Part shown: positions 23,973-48,796 of the stretch, one piece after another | Position numbering within the stretch: position 1 is the first letter of the stretch | How the letters are laid out: every line of letters begins with the position of its first letter | Notes under the pieces: generated by a model | Told to the model about the DNA's origin: nothing | Databases searched by the model: none | The model's input: only the letters and a program-made list of their open reading frames with translations | Translations under genes and position numbers: made by a program | Assembly: GCA_003427395.1 (NCBI GenBank) | Contig: BFEA01000018.1 | Location: forward strand, 3,006,622 to 3,060,024 | Length of the DNA stretch: 53,403 bases | Reading direction: 5' to 3' | Origin: Chara braunii | Taxonomy: Eukaryota > Plantae > Charophyceae

Positions 23973-24013
<41 letters not shown>

Positions 24014-24649
24014 TTGTTGTTGTTGGAAAACATCTGCGGGAGCCTACTATTGGAAGTGATATGAGAATTCCCCAATAGTAGGCCCTAGTGATAGATGGCT
24101 CCAACCTATTGGTGGGAAGCAGCACCTGCTGGAAACTGGGTCCAGCGTCCCACTTACAGTACTGGAGCAGGTCATGTCAATCAGTCATATCATGCGGAAC
24201 AGCATTGATTGCCCTCTTCAGAAGGGATTAACTGTCCGCCTATTTATAGGTGAGGTTACATCATCCCTGTGACTCCAATTGCAACTGCCGAAACCCATAC
24301 GGAATTACCTAGACCATCCTTAAACCCCCTCCCAGCCTAAGGATGCAGGTGAAATTGAGGACGCCAGTTGTAGCCTTACCCTTCGATGCTCCCCTGGCCA
24401 AGAAGTTTGTATGTCAGTTCATGTGACTTGCAATCATGTCAACGGGCATTTGTACGTCAGTTCATGTGACTTGCAAACATGTCAACGGGATTGCCTGTCC
24501 CACAAAGAGAAAAGGGACAGCGATGGGGACATCAGCAGCCTTTTCCCCTCCACTTCGCATATCTGCCGAGATGACAGTTGTTGCAGCAACGTGTGCTACC
24601 CAGGGGGGAAGAGGATGCTAGAGGCCCTCCCTTCTTAGCCCTTTCATAC

Positions 24650-26695
24650 GCGAATGCCAACAGAGAGCCTAACCACAATGCCCCACCCTGGTCAGTGAAA
24701 GCGACATAGCCAAGACGCGGACTCGAAACAAGTCAGTTTCGTCCCGCCACTTGAGCAGATGGCGGCCACCATGGAGGGTGCCTGCCATGCCAATCACGTA
24801 GTATTATACTAAAGGCATCGTGTGACCGTGTCATGTGAACTCTACCTATATGCCGCAAGTCCTGTCTAATGGCCACCCGATCTCCTTCCCTCCGCGTGGG
24901 ACCTTGCCTGAGAATTTGGTACCAAGACAGGGGGACAGCCTCGGTGAGGGTGTCCAGCCTCTGCTCTATGTGGTGGCAGTACCGAAGAGTGTGATGGAGC
25001 TGTCCTGCAGATTTTCACTCTTTTTCTGATCTAAATCCCATAAGTTTTTTACTGGAAATACCCCATTCTTGACTCACCCTTTCCAGGACGGGGCTGAACT
25101 GCACATGATTTGCCCTTGTTGATCCGTTATCCACCAATTACCAAAGAGGGGTTGTGGGAAGACCTCCCAACATTCCAGAGGGGATTTCTTTGGGAGCGGG
25201 AGTTCGCCAGATCTTTAGAAAGGACTGCTAGAACTGATGTAGGGGCTGATCCCTTTCATTATCATCAACCGTCCCCCCCAAGAAAACGGTTGGAAGTTTG
25301 CAGGAGATCAGCCATATTAGAGGGTGCACTCCTGGGCGTGTAGTTGGGGCAAGGCGGGCAAGGTGCTCACGAGCGAAGACTCTCCATGGACTTTGGAAGG
25401 AAAATATCAGTTTCTTCACCCATTAAGGCGGAGGGCCTGGGCCTGTATGTATGGTGAATGATCCCACGGTGCCCTCCGATTTTGGGTTGAATTACCACTT
25501 CCAAGGCGAGCCGGTTAGTTGCATTTGCATCCGGGGTCTCACAGTCGCCTCTTGAAAGAAAAGCAGCCACTTTCAACTGAAGTGATTGCAGTGCCACTTT
25601 ACTCAATGGTCAGAGTAAGGATTTATAATTTTATAGTACAAAGTGACAGTTAAAGCTCTGCCGAGAAGGGAAGTGGGCTTGCTACGCCAGCCAGACAGTT
25701 TAGCCAAAGCCGGAGAGGTGATCCATTCCTCATTGGTTGGGGGGCGACCAATGGTTGTCAGGGATAACCCCAAGATCCTGATTGGGGTGTCAGGGGGAAG
25801 CCAGGATATATTGGGGGTTTCCAAAGGATGTCCCCCTTGATCATGAGTCCACCATGCCTGAGTTTTACTTCCCCACTTAACCATCATGTTGGAAACCACG
25901 AGGCGTTCGATTTCTTTCATGTTTCCGAGGGTGACATCCACCATAATAGTGAGGTCGACTGCAAAAAAGGAACACACAGGGACTGTCTCTCCTGGGATCT
26001 CCATGAGCCTGATTCTGGTGATGTCCTTGTTTTTGTGTAGAATCTGCAGAATGGTCAACAGGGCTTCCAAAGGGATATAGAAAAGGAAGGGTGCTATGAG
26101 GTCCCCTTGGCGTAGAGACCGTTCGAGCTTTATTGGTAGAGCCAGTGAGCCATTGATCTGAAATTCTGAACCCGGGTGGTGACACTTTGGTAAAAACTTC
26201 TCACCCATCGTCCAAAATATAAGGCCAAAGTTCATTTTCCCCAGCCTCTCATCTAAGGACTCCCAATGTACATGACCATAGGTCAAAATAGATGAAAATA
26301 AAGGGCGCATTTTGGTGTCGATGCCTGGATAGTTGAAACATCTTGCTAACCAACAAGACGTTTTCTTGGGTCTTTCTATTCTGTATGAATCCAATTTGTG
26401 AGAGGTTGATGCTCCATCACCTCTATCATCCTCTTGGCCAAGGCTTTGGGCAGCATTTTATATGTTATTGTCAATAGGGTAAGAGGGCAATAATTTCTAA
26501 TATTGACTTTGCCCTCTTTCTTATAGAGGGATAACACTCCTTGGCCCACCATCTCCCTCATGCACCTCTTGAGTCAGACCTCGCGATAGAAGTCTAGCAC
26601 ATCTTGACTCATGAACTCCCACGTGGATTCCCATAATTCTTTTAGGAGGCCGTCAAGGCCGGGTGTCTTCTCCTCATCCGTCTGCATGAGGGGTG
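24650..26695 (-). pseudogene. LINE ORF2 reverse-transcriptase pseudogene
   Basis: KTPGLDG, YKKEGKVNIRNYCPLTLLTITYKML.KALAKR, INGS...I.L.RSLRQGDLIAPFLF, FAVDLT (eroded F/YADD) and IRILG; several frameshifts and stops. Confidence 0.93.
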
Positions 26696-26731
26696 TCCTC
26701 CTCCTTCCTTTCCCATTTCCACTCCCTCACA

Positions 26732-28793
26732 TGTGACGCTCAACCTCACGCCCTGTGCTACCTTCCGGTTGGAGTGTTTTGGTTTGCGGAAAGGGGCCCG
26801 GGAAAGGCAGCAAAGATGGGGTGTGCCAAGGATTTTTGGAAAATTGAGTGCAGGGACACAGACAAAATTGAAATCCCCCGTGTTGGTCCGACTGGAGCAA
26901 GACGAAGATCCGTCGCCGCGCGGGTTTGACGGGAGAAAAAGGCGCGTGCGGGACTTGCACCTATAGGAGATTCAATCCAAAAAGTATCGTTGAACTTCCC
27001 AGCGAACCATCGCTCTACGTTTCGAGTGAAAAGGGGCAAGTACACACGTCGTATTCCGTTTGCGGATGAGGTCCCGTCGGCGTTCGCTACACAATTCCGA
27101 ATCCGACGTGGAGGGCCTCAATCGAGTGGCTCTTTCCTTGTGCTCGTCCTCGCCGCGTGTGCGGTAGTGGAATCCCTTGGCCTAGTAACGCTCGAAGCGG
27201 TGGCAATCGCTGCACATAGTATTAGGCCAATGAGGTTCCACTGCCGTCCACGGTACGACGATTAGTTCGTTAAAGGGCAGTAACAACGAATGTGGCGGGA
27301 AGTGCGTATCGATGATAACAAAACCCGCACCGACAAATCTAGAACACCGAGTTTCGGGAGGAAAGAAGTAACACCCTTCGATCTTGGTGACGACTTCTCG
27401 TACGTCCCACTCGCATACACATATCCTTTCCTTGTTGTATGGGAAGGGGTGTGGTGGGGGCACGGGAAATTGGCGCCCAGTCGGATTGGGGCCGTCAGTC
27501 CACATGGCAGCGAAGATAAGCTCAAAATAGATCTTCATCATACATCACTCCAAGCAATCAGATCGTTCAGTCGATCAACCATACAATCTTGCTATAACAT
27601 CTCTCTAGCACGACTCACCGCATGTACATACCGAATGAGAAGTAAGGTTTACCATAATTCATCCATTTCGATATAGCGTGACTGGAGGAGAGAGAGGGAG
27701 GGAGGGAGGGAGGGAGTATGAACGTAGACCAGGAGGGAAGAACGAGTGGAAAGCAATCACAGAATGCCCGACAATCTTGTCCAGGAAAGTTTCGGCTTAA
27801 AAGCTAAGTGATCGGATTTCATACTTGAAGATACAAATTTAGGGACAACAGAAAAGGAAGCATTTCTGCCATAAGATTCCACCATAGCCCCAGGCCATAC
27901 ACTCACTCACTTCCGACTCGAACCTCGAACATCTCACTTGCATTGACGATCTCGGCCGTCACGTGCCAAATCCACCATAGCGATCGTCACCCCGCCGACT
28001 TAGCCTCGGCACGGCTGTACTTGGATCCCACAGTTCGTCGGGCGATCCAACATACCGAGCGTCCAAACTACAGCCAGCTCGTTGGGACTTTTCGACTCGC
28101 ACCTTCATTCATACCATCTAGCCACGGGTTCCTGGAAGCGGGCAGATGAGTCGAGAGAGCGATTTTCGGGAGCGCTTGCGAAATTTATAGTTGCGGAAAA
28201 GAAGATATATGCTAGCAATTGTTAGGACTGAGACAGGGCGGAGTAGGGGAGGGCTCAGGGATTGCCCGACGAAAGCCATGTCGGTCCTTCGGATCCCAAC
28301 TGCAGCCAATCAGAATCGCCGTGTATCAGGAATTTCCTTCTTACACGGCGCGTCTTCTTGACTAAGGGAAATGAAAGGGGGTCGACAGGGTATTTCGGCG
28401 TGGAGATCAGAGCGGGAAGAAGAAGAGCGCGAAGAATAGCGTGAAACGGAACCAAGATTCAGACGATCAAGAAGAAGAGAAAAGTTGTGCAAGGTCAAGA
28501 GGGATATGGAAAACGGTTACAGAGAGAGGAGCGTGAGCGCGAAGAGGAGAGTGTAGAAGGCAGCGTGGGAAGCGGGGAGGGGAGGCTTGCATGCATGGCG
28601 CCGACGTGGAGGCAAAAAGGGCACCAAAACAATTACAACTATTTCAAATTGAAAAGTACCATATCCGCGCGGTAGGGCAAGCACGGGAGAAAAATCCTAT
28701 GCCTATTGAGATTCCTACGAAAGTTCCTAGAGCTTTCCAAGACGAGGTTGGGAACATTCAAGCGCAAGAAGGTCCGGGAACTAGCGCGTCACA
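26732..28793. mobile_element. Solo LTR (2062 bp) inserted in the LINE
   Basis: 8-bp terminal inverted repeat TGTGACGC/GCGTCACA and 4-bp TSD CACA (26728-31, 28794-97). Confidence 0.82.
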
Positions 28794-28859
28794 CACACCC
28801 CCTTTTTCCTTTGCCTCATCTATGTAGACCCAACCCTTGTGGCCTGGATCCACAGTCCT

Positions 28860-29640
28860 CCAGAGGGTCATCTTGAAGGGATCCTAAAGGATGCACCCTG
28901 GCCCTAGCACGTGTAGCAGGTTGATGCTCGTAGTCTGGAACTATGGACGCGGTTTGTGTACTGTGTGAATTTTGAATTCACGGCCTCCAATCTGAAACGG
29001 ATTTGAAAAATGTGATCGTCTGGCAGGTCTAGAACGACGATCAAATAATCCTCTTGGCGGGCAAAATATGGGTGCAATGAATCGATCAAATCGATGATGT
29101 CGTATTTCTGGGTGAGATCCTGTACAACTTCTGCCTGCATCTCGATTGGTACATGGCAAAATTCCACCCAATAATAATATGGCGTTAGCTGGTCTCTCTT
29201 CTTGTCCAGGCGTTGTTGTCGTTTGGGGGCCTATTTGCAGATATAGACTTCCGATAGGGCACATTGAATACTATGCCAAGTGTCGATCCGTCATTTGTTT
29301 GTGTCAAACAAACTGGTGACAGTAAATACCGATGATGAGACTGGTTGGATGAAAAAAGAGTCCTACGCCCCTTACTCGCTCCCGTTGATGGAGGCTAGCC
29401 TCTTTCTAGTGTAGCCAATCTTGTCATTGGTGGACTTGCACACTGCGTCATCGTAAAATACCCAGTTGCTGGCATGACGCCTATGAACCGTTTCGCTGCT
29501 GGACTTTGGATGCCGAAAGAGCTTTGACTCTGTGCTCCTTACCTCCCTGGCTGATCACTCGGTCTTCAGACTTCGTGAGAAACCGGTAGAGGAAGAAAGC
29601 GCTTGTCATTGCCAGGTTGTCCAACAATATCTTCTATTCT
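28860..29640 (-). pseudogene. LINE ORF1-like remnant (RRM/DUF4283-like plus zinc knuckle)
   Basis: FCHVPIEM...LIVVLDLP...IRF..YTN...TCYTC*GQG resembles plant L1 ORF1 ending in a CCHC knuckle; same strand as, and upstream of, the RT. Confidence 0.6.
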
Positions 29641-29704
29641 TCACCCGCATCCTCTCCCTCCCCCTGCTTGACTGACAGGGATTTGCCACTATAAGGACGC
29701 TTAA

Positions 29705-29795
29705 ACCACCAGCACCTCCACGTTTTTAGGCGGTTAACGCGGTGGATGAATTGGTGCATCGTGCGGGTCCATATGCATTTGCGGGTACTGGTGGT
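29705..29795. mobile_element. 91-bp TTAA-flanked mini inverted-repeat element
   Basis: TTAA-ACCACCAGCACC ... GGTACTGGTGGT-TTAA; the same end TTAAACCACCAGTAC occurs at 52752-52766. Confidence 0.55.
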
Positions 29796-30225
29796 TTAAC
29801 CTTCTCAAAGCAGGAGGCGGAGGGGGAGGCTGGGGTGGCTTGAGCTTCGATTTTTTCTCTATCGTCTTCCCCTGAACAAAACGCACGTATGTACAATTCA
29901 ACTTTCCTTGGAAAAGTCAATTTCTCGGAGTGTCCCCCTGAAATCCAATTAGTATGCACATGCAAATAGTACGCATGTATGTTCTATTCGAAAAGTACAC
30001 AAGTGTGTTCTATTCAAATAGTACGCAGGCCCATTCTTGGCTGGCTGGCATGCGTTCTTGAAGCCTTTCGTGAGTTGCGTGTTTCCTGAAGTCTTTCGGG
30101 ATGGTGTGTTGCTCAAAGGCACTCGTTGGAGAAGAGCGCTCAATTGCACCTGCGCTAGTCGAGTTGTTGCTGTCGGATCGACCAGGTGCCAACGTCTCTA
30201 TCGCACAGGGGAAGAAGATCAGAAG

Positions 30226-30306
30226 CAGTAGTAGTAGCAGAAGGAGGAGAAGGAGAAGGAGGAGGAGGAGGAGAAGGAGAAGGAAGAGGAGGAGGAGGAG
30301 GAGGAA
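30226..30306. repeat. (AGT)/(AGG/AGA)n trinucleotide microsatellite
   Basis: Directly visible. Confidence 0.9.
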
Positions 30307-30598
30307 ATAGCGTGCGTAGCGGATCTTGGCGCGATTGATGGCGATGGCGATGGGGGATCTTGGCGGTTGATGGTGATGGTGGATCTTCGCGGCGCGTGAT
30401 GGATCTCGACGTCATTGCTGCAATGGTGACTTCGGATGGAGGTGCGTGCCGCGCTGCGCAGTTCAAATGCTACCTACAGTTGGTAGTGGGCCCGACAATT
30501 CAAATGCTATCTACAACCAGTAGCTGGGCCGATAGTTTGAATGCCACGAGTGGCCGGTATTGGGCCCGTGCACGAAACAAAAAAAGTTGTGTGTGTGT

Positions 30599-30690
<92 letters not shown>

Positions 30691-31099
30691 CAGGGTGTTC
30701 CCCTCCTTAGGGCAGGGTATTCCATGACTGGGGGGGCGGCACTCTTTTTTTTTTCTTTTTTTATTTTGCGCCGCATCGCGTACGGTGCACGATGCAGTGC
30801 GCGAGGTGCTTTAGACGGTTGGCGCGCACCTCAATGCGCCGCATGTTGCTTGCCATTGAGGTAAAACTGTTTCATTGTTGGATTGGCTCTTCTCAAGTGT
30901 GCTTTGTTGTCTACAATAAAGGTATAAGCTGCGTCGATATTGGATCTACTCATTTGGGTGGAACAGGGGCTGTTGTGGTGAAAATCTACAATGGACACAT
31001 AGCTTTTAGGGTCGCTGTTGAGGGCGGCCCCTCAAACAAATTGCCCGACCCATCTCTTAATTTTGGCGGGCGGGGGAACTCCGATCCAGTCCCCCTTGG

Positions 31100-31134
<35 letters not shown>

Positions 31135-31924
31135 CGGGGGACCCCAATTTCCACCCTTGTGGTGCACTGGATGTGCACGCCGCGTGCACAATGCCAGTGT
31201 GCCGCATAGGCGAGACTGGTGCGGACGTGATGTGCCACAAGTATGGTCCGTTTTTGAACTCCGTTGATTTTGCAACAACCTGTCTGGGTCCTGTTTGATC
31301 TTGGTCTTCGGTCTGAGCTTACAGCATCCGTTTGATTTTGTTGACTTGGGAATCATGTGTACCAGTACGGTCCTGATGAAAACCATTAGGGAATGCTCAT
31401 ATTAGGAATGTCTCTGTCTGTGATTACGGCCAGATTTAGCAGGAATATTATGAGTGTGAATTTCCCTTTTGTTTGCTTGAGAATCTAAAGCAAGATAGGA
31501 CTTGGGGTATAATTGGTCAATTCCTGAGTGTCCAGAATTGTGCGCGCACACACGTAACAGTGCAGTCTGGCTCCTGTGCTCGTCTTAGAAAACTCCAAGA
31601 AACAGGAGCACAATGCCATTGTAGTGTGCCGACTGATGAACCTTAAAGAAACTTCAATCCCCGAAAACAAGGAAGAGCCAGAGTTCCATTGAGGAAAAAC
31701 AACGTACCCACACTAAGACTTTGTGAATGTATGTGATTGGGATCATGGATGCCCCTTGATGTATCCGAGTGACCATTGATCAGTCGAGAAAGTCACTTGT
31801 GTGAGTACGCCCTGGAGGTCAACAATGGACTCCTTTTCCCTCTGCACACAACCCACTTCCTCTCCTCTGTGCTCCCCCCTCCGCTCTACTCCCTACTTGC
31901 TTCCCCCCTTCTACCGTTTTCTCT

Positions 31925-32050
31925 TTTGGAAACATTGCTTTGGAAGAGCTCAATCCAATGGGTGATAAGAGCGCCCCTTGAGTCAAGCCCTTCCAAAGAG
32001 GAGGGCTCCCACTGGTATGGAGCTCCACCTGCTGGAAACTGGCCCCAGTG
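31925..32050 (-). mobile_element. Orphan LINE/SINE 3' tail with conserved stem-loops
   Basis: CCAGTTTCCAGCAGGTG motif, a 25-bp stem with loop CGCTCTTATCA, and a terminal ATGTTTCCAA as in the LINE tail at 24024-24150. Confidence 0.75.
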
Positions 32051-34189
32051 TTTCTTCTGTTTTTTTAATTACTTTGGAGGCGGTGTCTTATTTCAGCACC
32101 GACTAACCCAACTTACCAAAGAACATATTTATGTATATATTTTATATTTTATTTACTTCGAAAAGTAATATATATATTGACAAATATTTTGCTAGAATGT
32201 CTTGCTCGGCCTGTGGATCATGGGTCATGATCGCACCCTGCTCATCCTCCCATTGGAATAGAACGACCAGACACCATGAATGTATTAATCACAAGTTTTA
32301 GGTTGATACGTGCCTTAGTGACAAGTTTTAGGTTAGATACATGCCTTTCATGTTCNNNNNNNNNNNNNNNNNNNNNNNNNNNNNNNNNNNNNNNNNNNNN
32401 NNNNNNNNNNNNNNNNNNNNNNNNNNNNNNNNNNNNNNNNNNNNNNNNNNNNNNNNNNNNNNNNNNNNNNNNNNNNNNNNNNNNNNNNNNNNNNNNNNNN
32501 NNNNNNNNNNNNNNNNNNNNNNNNNNNNNNNNNNNNNNNNNNNNNNNNNNNNNNNNNNNNNNNNNNNNNNNNNNNNNNNNNNNNNNNNNNNNNNNNNNNN
32601 NNNNNNNNNNNNNNNNNNNNNNNNNNNNNNNNNNNNNNNNNNNNNNNNNNNNNNNNNNNNNNNNNNNNNNNNNNNNNNNNNNNNNNNNNNNNNNNNNNNN
32701 NNNNNNNNNNNNNNNNNNNNNNNNNNNNNNNNNNNNNNNNNNNNNNNNNNNNNNNNNNNNNNNNNNNNNNNNNNNNNNNNNNNNNNNNNNNNNNNNNNNN
32801 NNNNNNNNNNNNNNNNNNNNNNNNNNNNNNNNNNNNNNNNNNNNNNNNNNNNNNNNNNNNNNNNNNNNNNNNNNNNNNNNNNNNNNNNNNNNNNNTGAAG
32901 CAATGAACTTGTAGCAACCAAAATGAACACGGATGGAAAAAAAACTACTAATGAAATGACACCCCCTTTGCTGCTGTTATTGATGTTATTGCAACAACCC
33001 TAACATAGTCCACCCTCCTGCAAAAAGGAACTAAAGTGCAAATAGCACTAGTACACGACCATACATCGGCCGCGGTGTCGAGCGCATCGGTCCCGCATCG
33101 CATAAGGGTGGGACCCTCCCGGTTGCGTCACGCAAGAATTGGTCTACCTCGTCGCGAATACACATGGAGCTTCCGCTAGCCGCTCTGGCCGAGTGCACCA
33201 GCCGTACCTCTCACGAGCCCCTACGACAGGATAGGGCCAACGCGAGGCACGACTTACCTCCACCTTACGGGAGCTATCACCTCCCTTCGGTGGGCGTATC
33301 CCCGCCGAGCTACCAGTCCACAGTACGAAAGCTAATCAGTTGCAATCGCAGAGGTGGACCAGCCGAGGGCATTTCTCGTTCACTCTACATAGGGGGTATG
33401 TGCGGTTTTTACGCCTATCTGACCCGCACGTGAACCGACGCACTGGGGGGCTGAAGTCCCAAGCGCGACTCGTCGTCGGTCGATTAGGATGTATCCCACA
33501 TACCACACGTTATACCACAACTCTCACGCACACGGAATGACACAAAACAAACAACACAACAACACTCCTAGTCCCTTTGGTAGCCATCCCATAACCTTTC
33601 GACGCGGAAAATCGGATAGGCGACACGCGTGAAACTTAGTATAAAACTGCGAGGACGCAGAGTCTTCCCATATCGAGTAGCAATGTATGAATATGCAAGC
33701 AGTCGCAATGATGGCGTACTATGTAGTGCCCATAGTCAATCGGTCCCTCGTGGATCCAAGTACCGCTTATGACACTGAAGTGTCAATCTCGAAGTATTGT
33801 GAGGGGCGACCCCTTGACGACACTGCACGGCTGAAGGAACAATCGTTTGGCCCCTGCGGCACCTTCAGCCCTTAGGCTGAGTGCCGCGATGGGCAGGGCA
33901 AATAGGCTCTGCGCGGGGTGATCCCTTGTACGTAGAGTCTGGGACCTGGGATGTCCTGGATAAGGATCTCGAATCCAGGCCCAGGACCAACGTCTGACTA
34001 AGAAACTTTTAAGAAGCAAAACGGTAAAGGAAGGGAGTCTCCTTCCGTTTCTCAATTTGAACCCCCATTAAACCCTCAGGCGTGGGCTCTTTAGGCCATA
34101 CAAACACTCAAACATCCCCTTCCACTTCCCCTCCACCTTCCTCTCTCTCTCCCCCTCCCTCTCCTTCTCCTTCCTCTTTTTGCCAGCAT

Positions 34190-34370
34190 CCTTTTCTTCT
34201 TCTTGTTCTTCTTCTTTTTCTTCGTCTTCATCTTCTTCTTCTTCTTCTTCTTCTTCTTCTTCTTCTTCTTCTTCTTCCTTTTTTTTTTTTTTTTTCCCTT
34301 CTTCTTCTTCTGCATCATTCGTATCTTTGTTTTCTTCTTCTTTTTCTTCTTCTTCTTCTTCGTCATCATT
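34190..34370. repeat. (TTC)n microsatellite with poly-T
   Basis: Directly visible; it explains the poly-K/F/L/S ORFs. Confidence 0.95.
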
Positions 34371-34619
34371 TGCCCCCCCACGCCGGCTGAGATCGACCCC
34401 TCCTTTGTCTTCGTTGTTTATATTGGGACGTCGGCAGGTTCGTTCATCCTCTCCTCCTCCCAGTCCCTCTTCCTCTCGACGTCGTGTTGATGCTAATCTG
34501 CGGGGTTCTTTGTCTTACTGACAACCTTCTCTGCCAGGTCGACGACGTTCATCATTCATGCGCCCCGCCAGATCAGACCTAGCTTTCCAGTGGTGACTGA
34601 ATCGGATTTGCGGGTAGAT

Positions 34620-35450
34620 CTACCAAATGCTTGTGGGTTGACAACCACAAATGTTTGCCTATAGGCTTATCAACGTCAATGTTATACTACTTCCCATTTT
34701 GTTACAATTGCTTATCAACTTGAAGTTGTTGAAAATCAGTTGTTGTATGACCATAATGGTCCACTGCCTGAAGGTAGTAATTATACTACCTCAGGAGGCT
34801 TTACTATAAATGTCTTACAACTAGCTTTCCACGATCACCACCTTCTTATATATCATGCGACGCCAGGCGATGACCTTAATGACCATCCTTATATTTCTGC
34901 CTGTATATTTTGCACAGACCCGGACATTATATGGCACTCATTCGTGCAACTGCCCAGTGGGAACTGTGGGATGGTGGGACAATGATTCAGGTTATTTTCA
35001 ACATAAATGAATTTCTGTGTGCATTACCGAATCATACTTTATTATGGATTATTGATGGACTCTCGTGTGACACCTGTCGGGACAGGGATGCCGTGCGTCT
35101 TGGCTGCGGAATTCATCACCTATGCCATCAACATTATCAATCTATTGCAACCGCCGCCGTCTGTGTCGAAGGGTGTCCAACATTTCCGCGTTGTATACAT
35201 CCTTATCACCTAGATATTCGCTGTCCCTTTTGGCCTCAAGGACGCTATCATGACTGCATGATGCCGCACTGTGATGAACGTCTTGCTGTTTTCTTGACAT
35301 GTGGACAACATGTCCTTTGTCAGGACTGTTTTGATGGGATGGTCCGTGCTAGTCGTTCTGCTGAATGCTGTGCTGAATTAGAACTCTCCTTGGGTATCCT
35401 TGTGAACATCCACGTCATCCTCAGCGTGCCTGTCCTATCTGCCGAGGTGG
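34620..35450 (+). pseudogene. Intronless pseudogene: USP/peptidase-C19-like His box followed by two RING-HC-like fingers
   Basis: YISA..LHRPGHYMALIR....WELWD, then CDTC-x9-CGIHHLCHQH...CPF and CMMPHC-x9-CGQHVLCQDC...CPICR (the last pair is frameshifted, 35431-35445). Confidence 0.65.
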
Positions 35451-35557: not shown

Positions 35558-35588
<31 letters not shown>

Positions 35589-37135: not shown

Positions 37136-37421
37136 GCATAAGAAATAATCCCAGAGGATGTGAAATTTGATCTAAGTAAAAAAAACTAGCTCAGAAAATG
37201 CAAGAATTGAAACTAACTCCTATAGCTCTAGCACGTGGCGAGCATCTAAAACAACTACATGTCAAACTGAAACTCAGACTAGGTAGTGATCTCACTCAAC
37301 CACATGCAAGGCCAAACCACAAAGGTAAGTACTGTCACCAACCTAAAGTCAACCTTGGTCAAACAATAGTTCGTAGTCTTTCAATGATTTATCCCTTATA
37401 CCCAGCTTACATAAGGCGCAA

Positions 37422-38201
37422 AGCTAGACCACCCAATCTTATGGGAACCTGTCTAGCTCAACCATTGAACATACACAAACATAGGGCACTACAACTTTTC
37501 TCTTCTTTGGGCTTATGACTAGGCTGTCCAACCAAGTCGCCCTGAATTGTTTAAGTATCCGAGTTATATATAATTGTCTGCTCATAGTCTTTTAAGGTAA
37601 CATATGACTGAACCGATCATCTTAGATCAAGGTTCAGCCTGTCCCTTCTTAAGGTAACATATGACTGAACCGATCATCTTAGATCAAGGTTCAACCTGTC
37701 CCTTCTTACATCAAATTTATTCTTAATTCATATTCTCTTCAGTTAATGATAAGCTATAGTCAGACCATCCAATGTTATGGAAAAATGTCTGACTAGCCTA
37801 TTCTTAATTAAAGTAGTATAGAAGTATAAACAAGTTTATCCCTTTGGTTTTAGCATGTGCGTGACTCCAGACTAGACCACCCAATCTTATGGGAACCTGT
37901 CAAGTCCTTTGCCTGAATTCTCCCTCAGAATAAAACAAAAGAGAGTCACGGTCATCCAATCTTATGGAACATGCCCAATTCTCTTTCAGAAACTAATAAA
38001 ACATAAGAAAACCCAAAGAAACAAGGCAACCAAGCCATCAAATCTTATTGAAAAATGTTTGGTCCCTGAAAATCAAGCACAAACAACCCTCGCAAGTCAA
38101 AGCAACCAGACCACCCAACCTTATGGGAACTTGTTTGGTCCTTCAGGCAGGCAAAAACAAACATAGCACTGGGCCCTCCAATCATATGGAGACTCTCCTA
38201 G
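37422..38201 (+). repeat. Irregularly spaced array of seven ~35-nt hairpin motifs (core CCA.CCAATCTTATGG.AA)
   Basis: Copies at 37422, 37757, 37870, 37950, 38029, 38105 and 38169. Confidence 0.85.
37591..37708 (+). repeat. 57-bp tandem duplication
   Basis: TTAAGGTAACATATGACTGAACCGATCATCTTAGATCAAGGTTCA.CCTGTCCCTTC occurs twice. Confidence 0.92.
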
Positions 38202-41200
38202 CCTTTGGTTGACCCAGTCAAACACAAGCAATACAACCTTCTTCCCACCTTTCCCCAGATGCAATCTGTTTTTACAATCTTCTTTCAGTCAACACAGCAA
38301 AGCTGAAATGAAAACTTGCATAATCAATCTTTTACTTAAATCTGGTTTGTCGTGAAAGTCAAACTGAAAGTCAAAGTAGGGATGTAAGCCGTATACTCAG
38401 TCAACCATAGCAAGATGTACAACTAAAGGTTATAACTGGATTTATAGAGGGAAAGCAAAAGATTACCTCTCAGTTCCTCCTGAGTTCCGGCAGAGCTCCC
38501 ACAATCAGTGGGCTGACTCCCCATAGAGTCTTGTTGTGGTCCTACGGGTTGCAATCCCGCCTGCCGCCTTCCTTTTGTAACATGATTACACTAAGAGTAA
38601 GAAGGGCAGGAAAAGGGGTTTCAAATTCTCGAGAGACAAGAGGGGGACAACTCAACTCCTAGGAGATGGCCTCGTTGCCTTGATACGCTTGAGGGCCCCG
38701 CAATGGTGGCCAGAACACGTTTGCAGCAATTGGTCAAACTGAAGTCAACTGCTGACTGTTGACCTCCTGATGATCCTTTTGTTTACCACAATACCCCCCC
38801 CTTGCCATACCTTGTGACCCACAGTACCCTGGCAACAGGCACCTTTGTAACCTCCCAACCTCCCTCCAACTGCCTTTTTTAGTGGGTGGTCTGTGCGCCG
38901 CCAAACCACCTAGCCTGCACAACTCAATTGATATGCTATAGCTTTACTCCGCAGCGAACGACGCCACCGATCAAACACTGAACCTGCAGTCTCGGCCACT
39001 TGCCTCCCGTCACTCTGGTCAGTGGTGAGCAGCGTACCGTTGAGTAGGTAAGTATGCTGCTCTCGCGGCTGGTCTCCTTGCATGGATGGGCTAGTGGTAT
39101 AAATGGTACAATGGCCAACAAATAAGTTTTGTCTCCCTCACTCTATTCTTCACACTAGTGTCGGCAATGAGATGGTAGCGTGTTGTTTGGCAGGTAAGTC
39201 TCCAAGCTCAGCGAACCCTTCGTCAGGACATACGTCAGTCAGTACATAAGCTTCCGATCCACTTAGTTGCGCCTTACCTCCTGCGTATTAGTGCACTTGG
39301 TTGCTACCCCGACCAGGTTCAACACTCGGCTTGTTGAACGAAAGCTTCGAGGCAGGATTCTCGCTGCCGCCAGGTATGTATGCTTCTCCCTCTCAATCGA
39401 GTCGACCACCTCTCTGCAAATCACGACTCCGTCTCTTTTTACCCAAACTATCGTTGTGCCTTCAGTAACAACAATACTCGACTGGAATGTACCCCCATAG
39501 CAATGCACAACTACGCTCAACGTAACTCCTTTGCGCAACCACTCATCAGACGGATCCGAGCGGCGACAACCAGTACACAGTAACTCCGACCATTGAGGCC
39601 GCAAGATTCAGTAATCAATGATCGAACACACAGTCCTGGTTTGCACCTGACCCTCAAACTGAACGAGGTACGAGGGTATGCCCTTCCTGCTAAATCCGCA
39701 AGAGGAACTTGTCCTTGCCACAATACTCTAACCTTAGCATACAAATACCCATTCGTTACCTCTTGCGCACCGTCGTACCCAAGCTATGGTAGCCACGAGC
39801 ACTCTATACAGGCAGCACCCACTCCGACAGAAGATGGCTGCCCTCGTAACCTTCGATCAAACAACAACGAAAGTATAATATGACACACTCCGTTACAACG
39901 TGAGACAATAGTCGAACTGGTTTCAGCATAGGATAGGGGTGAACCTTCCTTCAAGACATAAATGTATGCGCCGTTGTTTAACCATGCATATAGGAAGATA
40001 AAAAGCCTCTACTTCTCCCACTAAAATGAGCAGTTCGAATGAATGCTCTATCGAACACGGAGGCTTATACTGCTACCCAGTTCCTCATGCAAACAGACAG
40101 GGGGAGATCGCCTCTATCGACGGAAGGAGGGGGATCAAACGAATCCTCCGCCGGAGTGTGGAAATATACATTCACCTTTTGGACTATGTGCCCCCGCTCA
40201 AATCAGTCGGTCGACAGCTAAGTCTCCAAGTCCACGATTGTCCTCACGCTACCTCCCATTGATAGGACAAACAAGGTTGAATGAATCTTTCGCTATAACA
40301 TGGAAAAATACGTCCAGTTCTTGCTCCCACTTTGTCGTATATATGATCTTTTCTCCGCTCCTAACCGTCTATTCGCCCTCTACCTCTCACTATTTGTACC
40401 GGTATGACTAACGCCTCACTCTCAAAGTTGACATTGCCATCGCACTCGTGATGACTTTAACACTCTAATTTCAGTATCTCAGATCAACAACGAACGGTCA
40501 TCTCTACTCTCCCCCCTTTTCTCGGCATCTCCCTCGCACATATCTTCTTCCTACTAAACTCACCACCTACCGGTAGACAAGTGACATCTCACTCTCACTT
40601 TTCTCGCCACCTCAACTTTCTAAACGCTGCCTTCGACTTTCGTTGCGACTAGACCGTAATTCCAGCGCGGATTTCGTCCCCACAGGTCGATTCGCCAGGG
40701 GTCATAACCTCGAAATTGCCTTCTCTCTCTCCCTTTTCCGTTGAGAAGCACGTAGGCTATCTCCTTTCTTGCTAATCCCTCGCTTGTTTCTCCGCCATCT
40801 CCGACCTGCTTCTTCTCTGTTTGGCGCAACTTCCTTGTTTGATGTCGTTTCCTGGTTTAACGCACAGCATAGCCCCCACACTTACTCCAACAACGACTCG
40901 ACTACGAGTTTAGTTGTACTCTACGTCGTTATCCGACTAGTCCTCTCCTCAGCGTCCTCTCTGGTGCGAATACCTCATCACGGCTGAATCCGGCCGTCTG
41001 TTCACGCCTGATTCAGTCCACCGGCCAAGGGGTGAGAATCCGTTACTAGCCGGCTCGATCGACCTTTCACCCCTATACCTTTGTCCGACAAATGATTTGC
41101 AGGCCAGTATCGCTGTTGGCCTCTACTGAAGCCCCACTGCGCTATGTGCTTGCCTCCAGCACTCATGGCTACGCGGACTTTCTCTACATCGCTCCATCCT

Positions 41201-42715
41201 GGCAGAAGTGGACCTCCAACGGCCGTGCTCACACTTAGGTGTGGCGCCAAGCACACAGCCTACTGCAAACTTTGCAGCATAAGCCCCGATGTGGTGGGCC
41301 CCAGTCCAAATCTTGATGGTAGTAGCCAAATTTCAAATAAGAACTTTTTCGGCCAAAGTGGAGAAGAGTTCCATGCGAGCAGCCGCTGTAGCAGCCTCCC
41401 CGCAGTGTGCTGCCACTCCACCCAGGCACTGTTTGCCTCCTTCGGGTCTCAATAGGCAGGCTCACACTCGAACCTCATTTGCAGCAACAATGGCCAATGG
41501 GCGGTGCGTCCACCCCCGCCGGCTCACATGCACGTTAAATTCCTCGGTCCTTGTTTTCAAGACAGACGAAATAGATAAATTTCCATCAGCATCCCAAACA
41601 TGCAGGAACCCGTAGGTCAACAAGAAAGAGGCGCGTGCTCAAGGCCCTCGATCGTTGCGACGACCTCCAAATCCAGCGTCGTGCCCGAGTCAAGGGGCAC
41701 CAGAGCAAAATAATAATAATACAACAATAAAAATTATTTAAAAACTTTTAACTGTCAGAAATTCGACGAACGAGAAAAAAAGAAACGATAGTACCGTTCC
41801 TACGCCGTCGACGACAAAACTAAGGGGGATAGCCCCGCTGGACCCCCAACCCCTAGGCTCCTCCTCGCCGCTCTAGTACTCTATGCTGCCATCGCTAGCC
41901 TCGATCCCTGAATTTTCTCTGATGGAAGTCCGACGCTGTAACCAATAGTGCTAGGCCCAAAGTTGGGTCTAGTACTAACGGACACCCAAATAAACAGGTA
42001 CTGCACGACGCGCAGACCTACTGAAAACACTCCAAATCCACCTTGTTGTCGATGCCGTCCTGCGCACGTACGCACAAGTCTCAGGCAAGTACACCAATCA
42101 AGAGAGAAAATCTTTTCAATCCTAGTCTAATCAGAAATAAAAATCCGGCCAGCGATCACGCCGGTTCTTCAACCATCGACAGTTAAAATCACGCGCGCCT
42201 CAAGCCTGCTCGCCCACGCACTCTCTGCTCTAGTCAGCCACCCAGTCAATGTAAACCAAGACTACAACTGCGCCTCGCGCAGTATGCCTATACTTTAGAC
42301 CAAACTTATTCTCTGTTGCTTTCAAAAACCAGGGCAGATACCCTTGTAAGAGTATTCGCACCGACAGTGGGCCCCTCACCGGGACTTTTGGAGGCCGGAA
42401 ATGCGACAAAAGCAGTTGATGAAATTTATCAACTACGGCCCAGCCCGAAAGTTGTGGTGGTGGGGACGAGTTCATTTTCTGCAAGGCTGGGCCCATGTAA
42501 AAGGGAGAGGGTGGAAGCAATATGTAACAGTAAGGTCTGGCAGTATAGCAGGCAATGAGCTGATCACTCTCTTGCTCTCTTTTTCTCGCTATTTCTCTTC
42601 CCCTTCCACCTCTTTCCTGCTTGTTCCCTCATTTGCTTCCTCTTTGCCTCTTCCTTCAGCAAGAGAGAGCGATAGAGAAGTCTGGGGGAGGGGGGGAGTG
42701 AGCGCAAGCAAGTGA

Positions 42716-43190
42716 GATGGATAGATAGACTGACAGACAGACAGACAGAGGCAGACAGACAGACAGACAGAGACAAACAGGCAGAGACAGACATGCAGAC
42801 AGACACACAGGCAGACAGACAGACAAACAGACTGATCGACCGACGGACCGACCGACCAACTGACCGACCAGGTCGACGGACTGATCGACTGACAGAACGA
42901 CAGACCGACATACCAACGGACTGACAGACTGATGAACTGACAGACCGAGCGGCCGATGAACCAACCAATGGACTGATTGACCGACCGATGAACCGACCGA
43001 CCAACCAACGGACTGACAGCTGTCTCTTATACACATCTAGATGTGTATAAGAGACAGCCGATGAACCGACCGACCAACCAACGGACTGACAGACTGATGA
43101 ACTGACAGACCGAGCGGCCGATGAACCAACCAATGGACTGATTGACCGACCGATGAACCGACCGACCAACCGATGGACCGACAGACCGAT
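42716..43190. repeat. (GACA)/(GACC)/(GACT) tetranucleotide low-complexity tract
   Basis: Directly visible. Confidence 0.9.
43020..43057. other. Nextera mate-pair junction adapter (sequencing artefact)
   Basis: Exact 38-bp palindrome CTGTCTCTTATACACATCTAGATGTGTATAAGAGACAG (two Tn5 mosaic ends). Confidence 0.99.
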
Positions 43191-44673
43191 TGGCAGGGCC
43201 ATTACGAAAATGGCGCCCTTCTACAACTGATAAATTGTTGAGATGCTTTTCAAATGGACCGAAAAAGCGGTCCGATGGACTGAACTGTGTTTACGGAGAA
43301 TACTCGGAAAACGAGACGGAGGTTACATACGTTTTCATTTGCCCCGGGGTGCACTCTGCCATGAATCCACGACTGTTCCAAAAGTAGCGGCCTGTGCACA
43401 GTCCAAGCGAAAACTAATTTTTTTGCAGTGGAACCCCGCTGCCTATGTTAAGCAAATCCTCAAAAGAGGACTGTGGAGCACAACCCGTAGACTACAAATC
43501 CAAGCTTGAGGTCTCAAGTGGGGTCCAATGTGCTAGTTTTTGCTGTTTCATATCAGGCGACCTGGCTACATTCTGATGAGGCAACATTTCCCACTCATCA
43601 GAGACCTCCCAGTCAATCCCCTGGGAAGCCCAAGGGTGATCCATGCTGCAGGACATTCCACAGTCCAGTTTCATTAAACCACCACTACTTTTGACCCGTC
43701 CCTTGCCAAGCCTCAAAAAGCACTGCGCGCCAAAAGAAAATGAACTGGCCATGCAAGCCATTTTGTTTCGGTAGGCCAACCTCCGAAACTTGCAGTCGCA
43801 TGCGCACTGTGTCGGGAAAAAATGACTGGGAAATGTGCCGGTGGTTCAACTGGATGATTACTGGGATGCTGGGACCCATTTCCAGAGGTCATCCTCCTCA
43901 CCAATAGAAAGGAGCCATCTGTCAAAGGGCTCTACGATTGGAGGATGCTCCTACCACCACCAATAGTATCCCCGACTGCTATGTTGAAAAAAAGAAGAAA
44001 ACGAAAGAAGGCTTAGCAAACAGTACCATCTACGTACCCAAAGAGCCTGCTTGGGGTGGTGGTATGTCTGGGCTAAGAGAAGGACCATGAGTGTGGTAGT
44101 CGTATTGGGCAGTTTCTTGTTAACTTGGCACAGACATAGCATTGAGGTAGGGAACGAAGTAGTGACAGCTCAGAGAGACTTCTAGGGTATATTTAAATCG
44201 GGACTTCCGTGTACCACACCCCCTAGTAGGCGAAGTCCGGTTATTGGAAAAAAAAAAAAAAAACTTAAAAAAAGCTCATTTCCGTGGATGTATCTGGCAG
44301 GTTTTACAGATGCAACCAAAAAAGGTCGTACTGTGAATAGGCCAGAGCATATTATGTATGCACCAGAACGGAGGTTCACTTGGACCAATGAATCCACCGG
44401 TACTTTTCATGGGCAAATTTATGAGATGAGATTGTGCACACGTAGCGTCCTTCGGGATGCATCAGCCTGCCGTGCGGCAGAAAATACATCCAGGCAAAAC
44501 CATCGCATATGCAGTACCATTTTGCCTGGATGAATAACATGCCGCTTGGCAGGTCGGTACATTACAAGGATGCGGTGCAAGGCGTGCTGTGTCAAAACTG
44601 CCATTTATTGTTTTTTTTTTTTTTTGTGTTTTGGAAAGTTGATCTTGATCGAGACGTACCTGCCCCTTGCTTT

Positions 44674-44710
<37 letters not shown>

Positions 44711-46419
44711 GGCGACAGCCTTGGGATATCTTCATTGATCGGACCGCCCCTTGGTAATTCAGAATGATTTATTCCATTCATCAAGGTCCAAAGCAGGATT
44801 TGAACATGGGTCTGTATTTCAACAGTGCATGGGTGCACCAACTGAGCTGGGCTCGTTGGTGTTACCTTCGTCTTCTTCTTCTTCTTCTAGACGGTTTTTT
44901 TTTGCTTAAATTCATGAGGGAAAAAAAAAAAAAAACCCATATGCATGTGCATAGCTCTTCATACTGGGTCATCAGAAACGCCTGTGGCAGGTTAGCGTGT
45001 CTTTTTGGGGGCCTGGGTCCACTACACATCACTCTACATGGACTTGGACGCTTTGAGGACCAGGTACATTCGGACGAGTCCGGCATTCTGAATGTACTGC
45101 GCCCAGAAAGCGTCCAAATGCATGTAAAGTATTGTGTAGTGGAGCCAGGCCCTTAAACCAAACAAACAAAGTGTCTCATCATAGTGTGATGGCACTGTAC
45201 AGACTCCTGAGACGTTTGCTATTGTGTATGTGGTACTATGTGCACACACAGTCTGTCTATACCCCATTCTTGCTCAAGAACAACAAGCCCTCAACCATCA
45301 TCAACCCTTCACTCACACACCCCTTTCTATCCTGTCTATTGACATGTCTGACGATTTCTTTCTTCTTTTTTTTTTCCTCCCCCCCTCCACCCCCTCCTCC
45401 CCTTAAGGAGAGTGTCTGCCGATTTCACTGAGAACGCTATTTCTGCTTGGCTTAGGGTTCTTTCCTTCCTCCTCCTGACGTCATGCCCTTCTTTTTTCTT
45501 TTTTTCTTTTTTTCTTTAACAAGCACAAAATGCCCCATCTATTCTGCCCTTCCAACCAATACTCTGTCTATACTTCCACCTACAAAACCCAAACTCTGTC
45601 TATACTTCCATCTAGAAAACCCCACCTCTTGTCTACACTGCCCGGGTCTCACTAAGTTTTTTTTTTTTTTTTTTTTTTTTTTTGGAAAGCATTAGCCTTA
45701 TATTGGAAAAATTCCAGAAAGAGACCGGGGACCTCACAATTCAACCCGGAGTTATCCTGGCAGCCTCAGCCAGTTTACAGTTTAGCTTTTGAGCACAAGT
45801 CATATCTGTGTCTACCAACCATAGATAACTCCGCCCTACATAGGGAAACTAAGTCCGAGATCTCGTTCTAATTACCATCGGTTTCCAAAAAAATAATCGT
45901 GAAGCTCAGAGTCTCACTTAGGTTTAGGATCGAGATACAAAGAAATTTCAGTAGGGTCTCTGGTCGTCAAACCTAAATGCAGTTGCTTGGGGGGGGAGCA
46001 GCCAAGTTGCCGCGTTTTTTTTTTTTTTTCTCTTTAATCTTCCCCATTGTTGGGGTGTTGCGTTTTGCGGGCCTACTGAATGGTTCCGTTTTTTTACTAT
46101 GGATATGGTAGAATGTTTGGTTTGTGAATCTTGTCTGCTTCGGTTCTGTATATTGGGCATCCTGGTTGGTTGTTTTCCCGGTGGCCTTCTGAGCGCGGGG
46201 GCGGTGCTTGTATGTGGGAATCGTCATCCGGGATTGTCTTCTCTTTCTCTTTGGTTGTCACACTGTGGACCGGAGCTTTTTTTTATTTTTTTGCAGACGA
46301 GAATGATTTGACATCCTGGTTGGTCTTGTCCCGTCGTTTGGCCTGTGGTGTGGTGCAGGGGCGGTGCTTGCATGGGGGACTTGTCATCTGGGATCTGTTT
46401 TGTTGCCCCCTGTTCTGTN

Positions 46420-46802
46420 TTATTTGGCTGTTCCCTTCCTCTCTTCTTTGCCTCTTTGCCTTTTGGCTGTGTGCAAGTGGGTCGATATGACACATGGGGG
46501 TGGGGGCACCCGCCGATCAACCTACATCCACGTGGGCGGCCTTGTACGCAAGAGGTTCTGAACAGGGGGAGTCTTGTAAGGAAGAAGATTAAAAATGAAT
46601 TGATATTTTTTGTGTTTTCCTTTGTTGTTGTTTTTTCGCTTTTGCGCTCTGATATTTATGTGACGATATCTTTCTTTCCCTATCTTTCTTTCCCTATCTT
46701 TCTTTCCCTGTCAGGTTTGGTTTCCTCCTCCCCTTCTTTACCTCTTTGCCTTTTGGCTGCGTGCAAGTGGGTCCTTGTGACACACGGGGATGGGGGCAGC
46801 CA
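46420..46802 (+). repeat. Copies 2 and 3 of the structured repeat seen at 35690
   Basis: 46712-46802 is nearly identical to 35694-35783; 46420-46570 is more diverged. Confidence 0.88.
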
Positions 46803-46844
46803 NGAGAGGGGACCGAGGGGACCAAAGAAGGGGAGAAGGGAAAG

Positions 46845-47402
46845 GGAAGGGGAAGGGGAAGGAGAAGAGAACTTAGAGAAACGGCTCTACCCTTGCAGCC
46901 ATAGTCACATGCCCAAGGGGGGGACTGCTGCAACCCACACCCTCCTCCAGATCCTGGCTCTTCTTCAGGGTTCCCCCACTGATTGGGAGGCTTACTAGGA
47001 GCACCCAGTCATGCAGCAGGGGGATCCCTAAAAGAGGGAGCTGCCGGGGGGAGGAGGGGGCTGGGGGGGGGGTCCCTAGCTGTCTCACAGGCCTCTTATC
47101 GGCATCTCAAGATCTTCCCTAGGGGAAAGGGAAGGGGAAGGAGAAGAGGACTTAGAGAAACGGCTCTACCCTTGCGGCCCTAGTCACATGCCCAAGGGGG
47201 GGACTGCGGCAACCCACACCCTCCTCCAGATCCTGGCTCTTCTTCAGGGTTCCCCCGCTGATCGGGAGGCTTACTAGAAGCACCCAGTCATGCAGCAGGG
47301 GGATCCCTAAAAGAGCGAGGTGCCGGGGGGAGGGGGGGGGGGGGGGGAGCGTCCCTAGCTGTCTCACAAGCCTCTTATCGGCATCTCAAGATCTTCCCTA
47401 GT
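46845..47402 (+). repeat. ~280-bp near-identical tandem duplication
   Basis: GGAAGGGGAAGGAGAAGAG.ACTTAGAGAAACGGCTCTACCC...GGCATCTCAAGATCTTCCCTAG occurs twice. Confidence 0.92.
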
Positions 47403-48214
47403 GGTTTTAGTAGTGTGCTTCCTAGGTGTTACTAGTATGGTCCCTAATACTCTATTTCTTATTTCCGCCCCGAGTGGCTTTACTAGTGTGGTCCCTGATA
47501 CTCTATTTCTTGATTCCGCCCTCCAGGCATTTGAAGAGCATCTGGTTTCATGTACAGAACATTATTCATGTCTCTCTGGCTTGTCCCTCCATCTTTGCCA
47601 AAACCATCTATTTTATATATGCAGCCTAATACTGTAGTCTCTCTACCCTTGTCTCTCTGCTGTTGCCAAGAGACTAACAGGGCTTCTGGCTATTCTACCC
47701 TGTATTTACACCTAGTTTCCCTCCATGTTCATCCATATCCCCTTCTTCCTGCCTTTCTTTCCATTCTTCCTTCATCTACTAGGATTTCTCCGCTTCCTAT
47801 CTCAAAGTTCAAGTATGTTCGACTATGTTTTCCTTGCTTTTGATGTTTTTCAGTTTCTTAAGGATTTTGTCCTTCTTACCTCCCAATCCTCCTACTTCCG
47901 TCGTCTTCCTACATGGATGTCTACCCCCCCTGCCTACCCAACTATTATGGTACACTCAAATCCCACCAAAGCCTCCTCTTCCTCCTATCCTTCCTCTGTA
48001 ACTATAATACACCTCGGTTATTCCCTCAATTCCCTGCAGATGTCTACGGGATTCCAGCAGCGAGTTGTAGATATTCTTTGTGGTCAAATCTTGGAGCTGC
48101 ACCGTTTTCCTCTGCATCCCCTGAGCTGGCCGTTCCCACTCCGCCGGGTCCCATATGAGATGCCGTGCAAGCTAAGCTATATTCTTCTCTCAATTTGACC
48201 TGTCACTATCTACC

Positions 48215-48732
48215 TTTTTTTTTTTTTCACCTCCAAAACCAGTGACCTCTACTGGAGGTGATACGAGTAGCCTCCTCTAGTAGTCGCTGCCCCTGGTTGA
48301 CCCATCTATTGGTGGGGAGCTACACCTGCTGGAAACCGGGTCCAGCATACCCGTACAACCATGAGATTCATGAGGACTAACATAAGCGTAACCCGCCAGC
48401 ATTGATTGCCCCTGATTGCCCAGGAGGATTGACGAAGCAGTAGGAAGTTCTGTAGCAACAGAAGTGCCTCTTCACCCTTCAAACAGGGCGCCTCTTCTAG
48501 CTTGGCATATCCAGCACTACTCCTAAGCCTGTTCAGGGGACCCCTGCAAGCATAGCTAGGCCGGGGCCGGTGTGGGGTGGGGTGGGGGGGGTTTGTTTGG
48601 CTAACGCAAAGATGGAGCATATTGCCAGTAGCTGCACCTCCCGTCTACTTCCCCCGGCCCCATCGAGTAACAGCAGTGTCTATGGCCATCACTCATGCGC
48701 CACGCATGACTCCACACACACACATACACGGA

Positions 48733-48796
<64 letters not shown>

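Follow-up and report, generated by a model that had tools for sequence, protein, structure and literature searches.

What recurrent RNA structure closes the poly(A)-tailed elements of the charophyte alga Chara braunii, and what might it do there? The question is raised by a 53,403-nt stretch of contig BFEA01000018.1 (positions 3,006,622 to 3,060,024, forward strand; the window in what follows) of GCA_003427395.1, which serves as the C. braunii reference assembly in a Chara paper (PMC11982790). A sequence-only reading of the window had picked out three loci with a common fold of two hairpins and a long, loop-capped stem, and had seen in them a recognition element for reverse transcriptase (RT) that joins a long interspersed nuclear element (LINE) to a short one (SINE). 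Each locus is a copy of an RNA module that stands at the 3' terminus of C. braunii L1-type LINEs, and the fold is clearly under selection. The general claim, that retroelement 3' ends bear a structured RNA that is conserved and covaries, is upheld by covariation in the long stem and by association with poly(A), whereas the partnership with a SINE is not. From 5' to 3' the module runs from GGGAC through hairpin 1, a predicted pseudoknot and, in one group of families, a long hairpin, to 8-15 U/G-rich bases and poly(A).

Copies, abundance and transcription

When the minus strand is read, all three of the loci first described (labelled c24, c32 and c48) have the reported architecture. They are real but do not exhaust the window, in which a fourth full copy (c43) and a fragment at 6430-6469 had been overlooked. 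The copies and their parts are as follows.

24024-24153, minus strand: c24, full tail of a decayed L1-like LINE (folding, covariance model)
24146-24128, minus strand: hairpin 1 of c24
24126-24098, minus strand: predicted pseudoknot of c24
24085-24040, minus strand: long hairpin of c24
24065-24057, minus strand: loop motif of c24, CUCAUAUCA
24039-24024, minus strand: terminal stretch of c24, GAUGUUUUCC
23975-24023, minus strand: (AAC)n and poly(A) tail of c24
24200-24214, minus strand: upstream box of c24, GGGCAAUCAAUGCUG
25035-26669, minus strand: decayed L1-type RT remnant of the c24 LINE (tblastn, E 1e-12 to 1e-5)
31925-32056, minus strand: c32, tail copy with a degenerate A-rich end
31998-31938, minus strand: long stem of c32, wholly different in sequence
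31971-31963, minus strand: loop of c32, CUCUUAUCA
near 32101-32116, minus strand: decayed upstream box of c32
43861-43987, plus strand: c43, fourth full copy, with a c24-like long stem (core covariance model)
43861-43915, plus strand: core of c43
43948-43956, plus strand: loop of c43, CUCCUACCA
from 43988, plus strand: A-rich end of c43
48215-48514, minus strand: c48, a 300-nt tail-only retrocopy nested in a tRNA-headed SINE
48353-48298, minus strand: core of c48
48296-48233, minus strand: long hairpin of c48
48267-48259, minus strand: loop of c48, CUCGUAUCA
48411-48397, minus strand: upstream box of c48
48227-48215, minus strand: A13 of c48
6430-6469, plus strand: hairpin-1-only variant, GCCGGG/CCCGGU, followed by poly(A)

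The loop that had been called conserved is so, the nonamer CTCNTATCA standing at 24065-24057, 31971-31963 and 48267-48259, and the upstream box attributed to two of the copies is exact in c24 and c48 (GGGCAATCAATGCTG). The box CCRGTTTCCAGCAGGTG occurs three times where 0.2 occurrences are expected by chance, CAATGCTGG lies 40-58 nt 5' of the module in 4 of 22 copies (3% by chance), and the box region of c24 (24192-24233) has 10-20 times the genome abundance of the remaining LINE 3' untranslated region (UTR). A match to the box at 43634-43648, with three mismatches and a different spacing, is at chance level and was rejected. Two assembly gaps fall in the window. In element orientation, the one at 32356-32895 lies ~300 nt to the 5' side of c32 and outside every locus; no claim requires continuity across it, and it limits only statements on sequence upstream of c32. 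The other, at 48797-48839, interrupts a (TG)n run in the body of the SINE and does not touch c48.

Outside the window (loci L011-L019) the module was followed into one metagenome contig, L011, and into ~230 kb of the C. braunii assembly, L012-L019, reached via the protein P0002 and seven further LINE proteins, all encoded on GCA_003427395.1. Window and L012-L019 have repeat families in common, at 70-98% identity. In ~286 kb a covariance model of the core gave 46 matches (36 at E<=1; 10 at E<=0.1), 26 of which are full modules, and the set of tails drawn from the window and from these sources numbers 17-18. Copies in L012-L019 were retrieved by the core and not by the loop, so that conservation of the loop there is no artefact of the search. 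L011 carries a module copy with an RT fragment whose nearest relative, in an exhaustive protein search, is P0002. It is the only real one of 11 loci in viral and metagenome contigs that match the box and loop pattern: L001-L007, L009 and L010 are chance matches within one viral gene, and L008 is a separate, unrelated chance match. A word-based protein search found no match for the RT open reading frame (ORF) of the window and only itself for the L011 fragment, and a Pfam search with the decayed ORFs of the window found no match.

Positions 23940-24540 of the window were compared, at 80% likeness, with two runs of DNA (Logan contigs) and two of oligo-dT RNA. Over 24108-24149 the summed word depth is 1.4-2.1 million, compared with ~200-550 over the rest of the c24 LINE 3'UTR and the long hairpin and ~10-17 in single-copy contigs, and the edges of homology are sharp (24151/24152 and ~24106). 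More than 7,700 contigs include the core segment while their flanks disagree, and the downstream read consensus, AUGGAGCC, is the second strand of what is described below as stem 2. The copy number of the 47-nt core is on the order of 10^5, a figure with which its density in the sampled DNA, about one per 10 kb, is consistent; the C. braunii genome is roughly 2 Gb. The commonest core form is that of c48 and L011, with CCCGGUU, GCUCC and AAUAGAU. In RNA the depth over the core is 2,500-5,700 with a strand bias of 5:1, and nearly all core reads extend into unrelated sequence, from which it follows that the core is transcribed in many contexts; provided that the library is of the usual dUTP type, these RNAs bear the module in sense. 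From c24 itself there is hardly any transcript. An opposite orientation for most copies, considered on account of an A-rich plus-strand flank in the read consensus, was rejected, the sense flank upstream being simply U-rich (35% T).

The fold of the core and of the long hairpin

Read 5' to 3', the core consensus is (A)GGGAC; GCUGGA-CCCGGUU-UCCAGC; A; GGUG-NN-GCUCC-C-CACC-AAUAGAU-GGAGC-C. Hairpin 1 has six base pairs and the loop CCCGGUU. What had been described as a second hairpin, GGUG-N8-CACC, does pair as proposed, but it is better read as stem 1 of an H-type pseudoknot, since its loop GCUCC can pair with GGAGC downstream. The region GGUG...GGAGC thus likely forms a pseudoknot in which stem 1 is GGUG/CACC, stem 2 is GCUCC/GGAGC and the third loop, AAUAGAU, is conserved. 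RNAalifold, run on a MAFFT alignment of 13 tails that was not fitted to any structure, favours stem 2 and recovers it together with hairpin 1 and a long stem of 10 pairs. In the same 13 tails 98% of cells are paired in stem 1 and 92% in stem 2, with no double changes in that set. Compensatory variants occur elsewhere: hairpin 1 is GCCGGG/CCCGGY or GUUGGA/UCCAAC in other tails, and the GCCGGG/CCCGGU of the fragment at 6430-6469 is likewise compensatory relative to GCUGGA/UCCAGC; the LINE tails of L013 and L014 combine a stem 2 of GCCCC/GGGGC with a stem 1 of CUG/CAG, and stem 1 in L018 is CGUG/CACG.

Some observations on the 5' side of the core may be added. The loop of hairpin 1 may pair with the 5' flank, UGCUU with AAGCA or AAGUA, in L014 (14296-14320, plus strand) and L013 (15575-15600, plus strand), and in the main type the GGG of the flank may pair with the CCC of hairpin 1 (window 24150-24138, minus strand). 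Such pairing may add a pseudoknot ahead of the other, so that two knots would stand in tandem. Hairpin 1 or the whole core is also found in tandem, 50-130 nt apart, just 5' of a full tail, and the read data contain joints at the core that go back on themselves. The tandem core or hairpin-1 repeats are as follows.

L012:48746-48851, plus strand
L012:42186-42066, minus strand
L012:47673-47495, minus strand
L019:15189-15333, plus strand

The long hairpin lies 3' of the pseudoknot in 17-18 tails, including the four window copies, and in most of them is made of 19-26 nested, imperfect pairs with the motif C-U-C-N-U-A-Y-C-A at the apex. The region between the second hairpin and poly(A), folded alone, gives a long hairpin with this motif at its apex in c24, c32 and c48 (z = -4.4, -3.9 and -2.4, respectively), 0-1 of 200 shuffles being as stable. 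The earlier statement that the stems differ completely between copies holds for c32, which is wholly different, but c24 and c48 both have the lower stem CUACUA/UAGUAG. Covariation of the stem, also claimed, is found across the 13 aligned tails, with double changes at nine of its ten pairs and 80% of cells paired. For the whole 25-pair structure the covariation score is 0.328, against 0.150 in shuffles (0 of 500 reach the observed value) and 0.07-0.10 in slid controls. Among five copies outside the full-tail model, four retain 8, 8, 9 and 10 of the 10 pairs, and the fifth, the decayed L012:38763-38875, retains 5 of 10.

Averaged over pairs of tails, the arms are only 37-41% identical, whereas identity reaches 78% in the apical nonamer and 82% in the core. 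Position by position the nonamer reads C (15/16), U (16), C (14), N, U (15), A (16), Y (15), C (16) and R (16), and frequently takes the form of a heptaloop, CUCNUAY, closed by a G-C pair, with CA after it. As an idea only, the heptaloop CU-CNU-AY of 17 long hairpins (for example window 24065-24059), often G-C-closed, fits the anticodon-loop pattern YU-NNN-RN. A U/G-rich stretch of 8-15 nt, such as the terminal stretch of c24, joins the long hairpin to poly(A), and the total length of the tail is ~125 nt.

Position at LINE 3' ends and possible roles

Poly(A) adjoins 21 of the 26 full modules, in that a tract of at least 7 A starts within 130 nt downstream, which is true of 5.4% of random positions. 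The distance is 6-16 nt (without the long hairpin) or 60-85 nt (with it) in 20 cases, and 127 nt in the remaining poly(A)-linked module. The link to LINEs, proposed for c24 and for an L1-type lineage, also stands. A decayed RT lies upstream of c24 at 26669-25035. In L019 an open ORF2 of 1095 aa ends at 14532 and is followed by an 880-nt 3'UTR that closes in a full tail and A28, and in L013 and L014 the order downstream of an intact ORF2 is alternative hairpin, pseudoknot, UGUUUCCC and poly(A), no earlier poly(A) intervening. The ORF2 of L015 is colinear, with five stops. Pfam finds Exo_endo_phos with RVT_1, and zf-RVT, on the LINE proteins, and the elements combine an APE-type endonuclease and RT with a poly(A) end. 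Residues 9-829 of the LINE protein P0003 align with residues 12-822 of human L1 ORF2p (E 2e-48), while the match to R2 is confined to the RT core; ORF2 being colinear with human L1 ORF2p from end to end, and with R2 in the RT core only, the elements are L1-like. The module terminates LINE families whose ORF2 proteins share only 29-47% identity.

We consider it somewhat more probable than an even chance that the Chara L1 ORF2 protein reads the tail as a handle acting in cis, because a sequence-free stem with an invariant loop beside the priming site is a known signature of stringent LINEs. The ORF2 protein, a reverse transcriptase, would pick its own RNA through the fold and start target-primed reverse transcription adjoining the poly(A), in what is termed 'stringent' template recognition; the long stem would act as a rigid spacer and the loop as the contact.

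Several points weigh against recognition of this kind. Poly(A)-ended retrocopies without the module are present in the window (U2 fragments, the SINE family Z and other tails), so that the LINE machinery, or that of some lineages, is not strictly dependent on the fold. The module-free poly(A) tails concerned are as follows.

23114-23343: module-free poly(A) tail
31132-31361: module-free poly(A) tail
44706-44935: module-free poly(A) tail
45684-45913: module-free poly(A) tail

To this must be added that some LINE tails consist of a core without the long hairpin, which is therefore not universally required, and that the pseudoknot is supported by few independent covariation events because the main-type core is nearly invariant. 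Target-site duplications of at least 8 nt were not found for c24, c32 or c48. Moreover, the sampled loci were picked via LINE proteins, which biases the densities.

The main rival, which we regard as unlikely, is that the module governs the fate of the RNA (stability, 3'-end processing or another poly(A)-related step) and not the choice of template. In one version AAUAGA in the pseudoknot loop would be a poly(A) signal that the long hairpin brings near the cleavage site. In favour of this rival, where the long hairpin is missing AAUAGAU stands 15-25 nt ahead of poly(A), and folding out the hairpin would give the other tails a similar effective distance; a U/G-rich stretch precedes poly(A), and the module is plentiful in oligo-dT RNA. 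However, AAUAGAU lies inside a predicted pseudoknot with compensatory stem changes, for which a linear poly(A) signal would have no need, and in stringent LINEs the known signature of protein recognition is an apical loop that stays conserved while the sequence of its stem is free (PMC3472496). In another version the fold would block decay or protect the tail, in the manner of the ENE triple helices of plant transposon RNAs, and plant retrotransposon RNA is indeed stabilised by ENE elements (PMC12501189). The paired U-rich internal loops that define an ENE are, however, absent from all 17 tails (none has two runs of at least four U after the pseudoknot), and an ENE-type clamp is therefore excluded.

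The remaining question is whether one or both of c48 and c32 are dedicated SINEs, non-autonomous and ending in a tail borrowed from the LINE, as the partnership first proposed would have it. In favour of this, short copies with the tail have no RT remnant upstream (none was detected upstream of c32, c43 or c48), c48 is a complete 300-nt insert with known borders, and c24 and c48 have one upstream box in common. The tRNA-like head 0.9 kb upstream of c48 nevertheless belongs to another family, Z, of which the relevant copies are as follows.

48515-49254, minus strand: tRNA-like SINE of family Z, part upstream of the c48 insert
49254-49185, minus strand: family Z head in the window
L012:21444-20950, minus strand: intact copy of family Z
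L012:26510-26900, plus strand: further copy of family Z
L014:19026, minus strand: further copy of family Z

The window copy of Z, which has a 334-bp internal tandem duplication and the (TG)n run with the N gap at 48797-48839, halts at 48515 (...GGAGTAGTG) and restarts at 48214 (GGTAGATAGTGACAGG...GAGAGAAGAATATAG), reaching ~48165; c48 (48514-48215, including its A13) is therefore a separate retrocopy inserted in the SINE. The intact copy runs from its head to a tail of its own, ...GGAGUAGUGGUAGG...GAGAGAAGAAYAUAG-poly(A), which is free of the module. Contrary to the first reading, then, the tRNA-headed SINE does not end in c48, and the proposed LINE-SINE partnership fails in the form described, the module being the tail of none of the four Z heads in ~286 kb. 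The Z head is itself tRNA-like only through its A and B boxes, since ARAGORN finds no tRNA in the window and Rfam none in 48100-49400 at E<=5. An all-against-all BLAST of the 700 nt upstream of 16 copies detected nothing in common beyond tandem hairpin-1 repeats, and there is no sign of a short family that has been amplified. Nor does the 5' part of c48 resemble a small RNA, and upstream of the core c48 has LINE 3'UTR features in common with c24. A borrowed SINE tail is on these grounds distinctly improbable, and the simplest reading is that c32, c43 and c48 are 5'-truncated LINE tails.

We give little credence to the idea that the tail is a composite tRNA-like or other host-directed mimic, recruiting a host RNA-binding or tRNA-handling factor instead of, or besides, the RT. 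On this speculative reading, a double pseudoknot carrying ...CCCCACCA... and a long arm with an anticodon-like heptaloop would be present in ~10^5 copies; if true, this would be a kind of LINE tail undescribed in any eukaryote. That the likeness of the tails is shared descent of recently copied sequence, with incidental hairpins and no function, is scarcely credible: the near-invariance of the core would suit a young repeat family, yet the diverged stem arms still pair around a much better conserved 9-nt loop, and the module closes LINE families with very dissimilar ORF2 proteins.

Other poly(A)-ended units in the window deserve mention. Two more with tRNA-like A and B boxes (44706-44860 and 22193-22330, both minus strand) end in A30 and A23 and lack the module. 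Rfam identifies U2 snRNA copies at 21706-21873 and 22627-22741 (plus strand), the second of which is cut after ~75 nt and runs straight into A25 as a retrocopy without the LINE tail module. Another type of retroposon tail, ...GAGGCUGCCAGGAUAACUCCGGGUUGAAUUGUGAGGUCCCCGG... followed by A27, is found at 45684-45800 (minus strand), and GAGGCUGCCAGGAUAACUCCGGGUUGAAUUGUGAGGUCCCCGG-type sequence in L016:12699-12870 (plus strand) sits after a hairpin-1 unit. In an A30-ended element at 23114-23343 (plus strand) the last 90 nt make up an extended inverted repeat, GGAUACAAAUCC...GGAUUUGUAUC, which has no relation to the module.

The Chara tail among known 3' recognition structures

Only U2 passes the gathering threshold when the window is searched against Rfam 15, E-value scans of c24 and c48 gave nothing above 19 bits, and full-text literature searches turned up no account of LINE tails in Chara. 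Elements of this kind are known, and it is the Chara form that appears to be undescribed. The fold, absent from Rfam, could become an Rfam family, and its covariance model marks retroelement 3' ends in a repeat-rich genome that is hard to annotate. With ~10^5 copies, the tails would also be a large natural mutagenesis set for what an L1-type ORF2 protein reads in its template.

The eel element UnaL2 and the zebrafish element ZfL2 display a conserved loop close to their 3' ends on a stem whose sequence is free to vary, and this structure is needed by the ORF2 protein of the LINE. Both are L2-clade stringent LINEs with 3' stem-loops and SINE partners (PMC3472496, PMC4176376). They differ from the Chara elements in belonging to another LINE clade and in having short stems, non-poly(A) 3' repeats and no pseudoknot. 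R2 offers a parallel to the predicted Chara pseudoknot, in that its pseudoknotted 3'UTR is bound by the R2 protein to start target-primed reverse transcription (PMC12222951, PMC11601368). Unlike the Chara elements, R2 is site-specific, uses a restriction-like endonuclease and has no poly(A), and there is no sequence or Rfam relation between the two tails, the likeness in ORF2 being restricted to the RT core. ENE elements resemble the Chara tail as structured RNA near the 3' end of plant retrotransposon RNA and by poly(A) (PMC12501189), but the pair of U-rich internal loops by which they are defined is what the Chara tails lack.

The closest counterparts are found within the green lineage. Descriptions of a stringent L1 3' hairpin, with covarying stem and conserved loop, exist for a single monocot lineage and a single L1 of Chlamydomonas (PMC3472496). 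LINE1-1_ZM (with ZmSINE2/3) and L1-1_CR are, like the Chara elements, green-lineage L1-clade LINEs that end in poly(A) (PMC3472496), and like them have a 3' hairpin with compensatory stem changes and a conserved loop, which is read as an RT-recognition signal. The Chara tail is longer (~125 nt versus ~45-50 nt), its recognition-type hairpin is preceded by a further hairpin and a predicted H-type pseudoknot, and its loop is C-U-C-N-U-A-Y-C-A in place of UCU plus a CGAG flank; the likeness is one of architecture and does not by itself imply homology. A SINE partner is known for LINE1-1_ZM (ZmSINE2/3), whereas in Chara the module does not end the sampled Z elements. According to Ohshima (2012), the ancestral green-plant L1 recognised a specific 3' RNA structure, a requirement that land-plant L1s later relaxed to poly(A) (PMC3472496). 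Recognition of the Chara tail by the RT is plausible and would extend this model of stringent plant L1s; a streptophyte alga with nearly all of its L1 families ending in a covarying fold would bridge the monocot and Chlamydomonas points.

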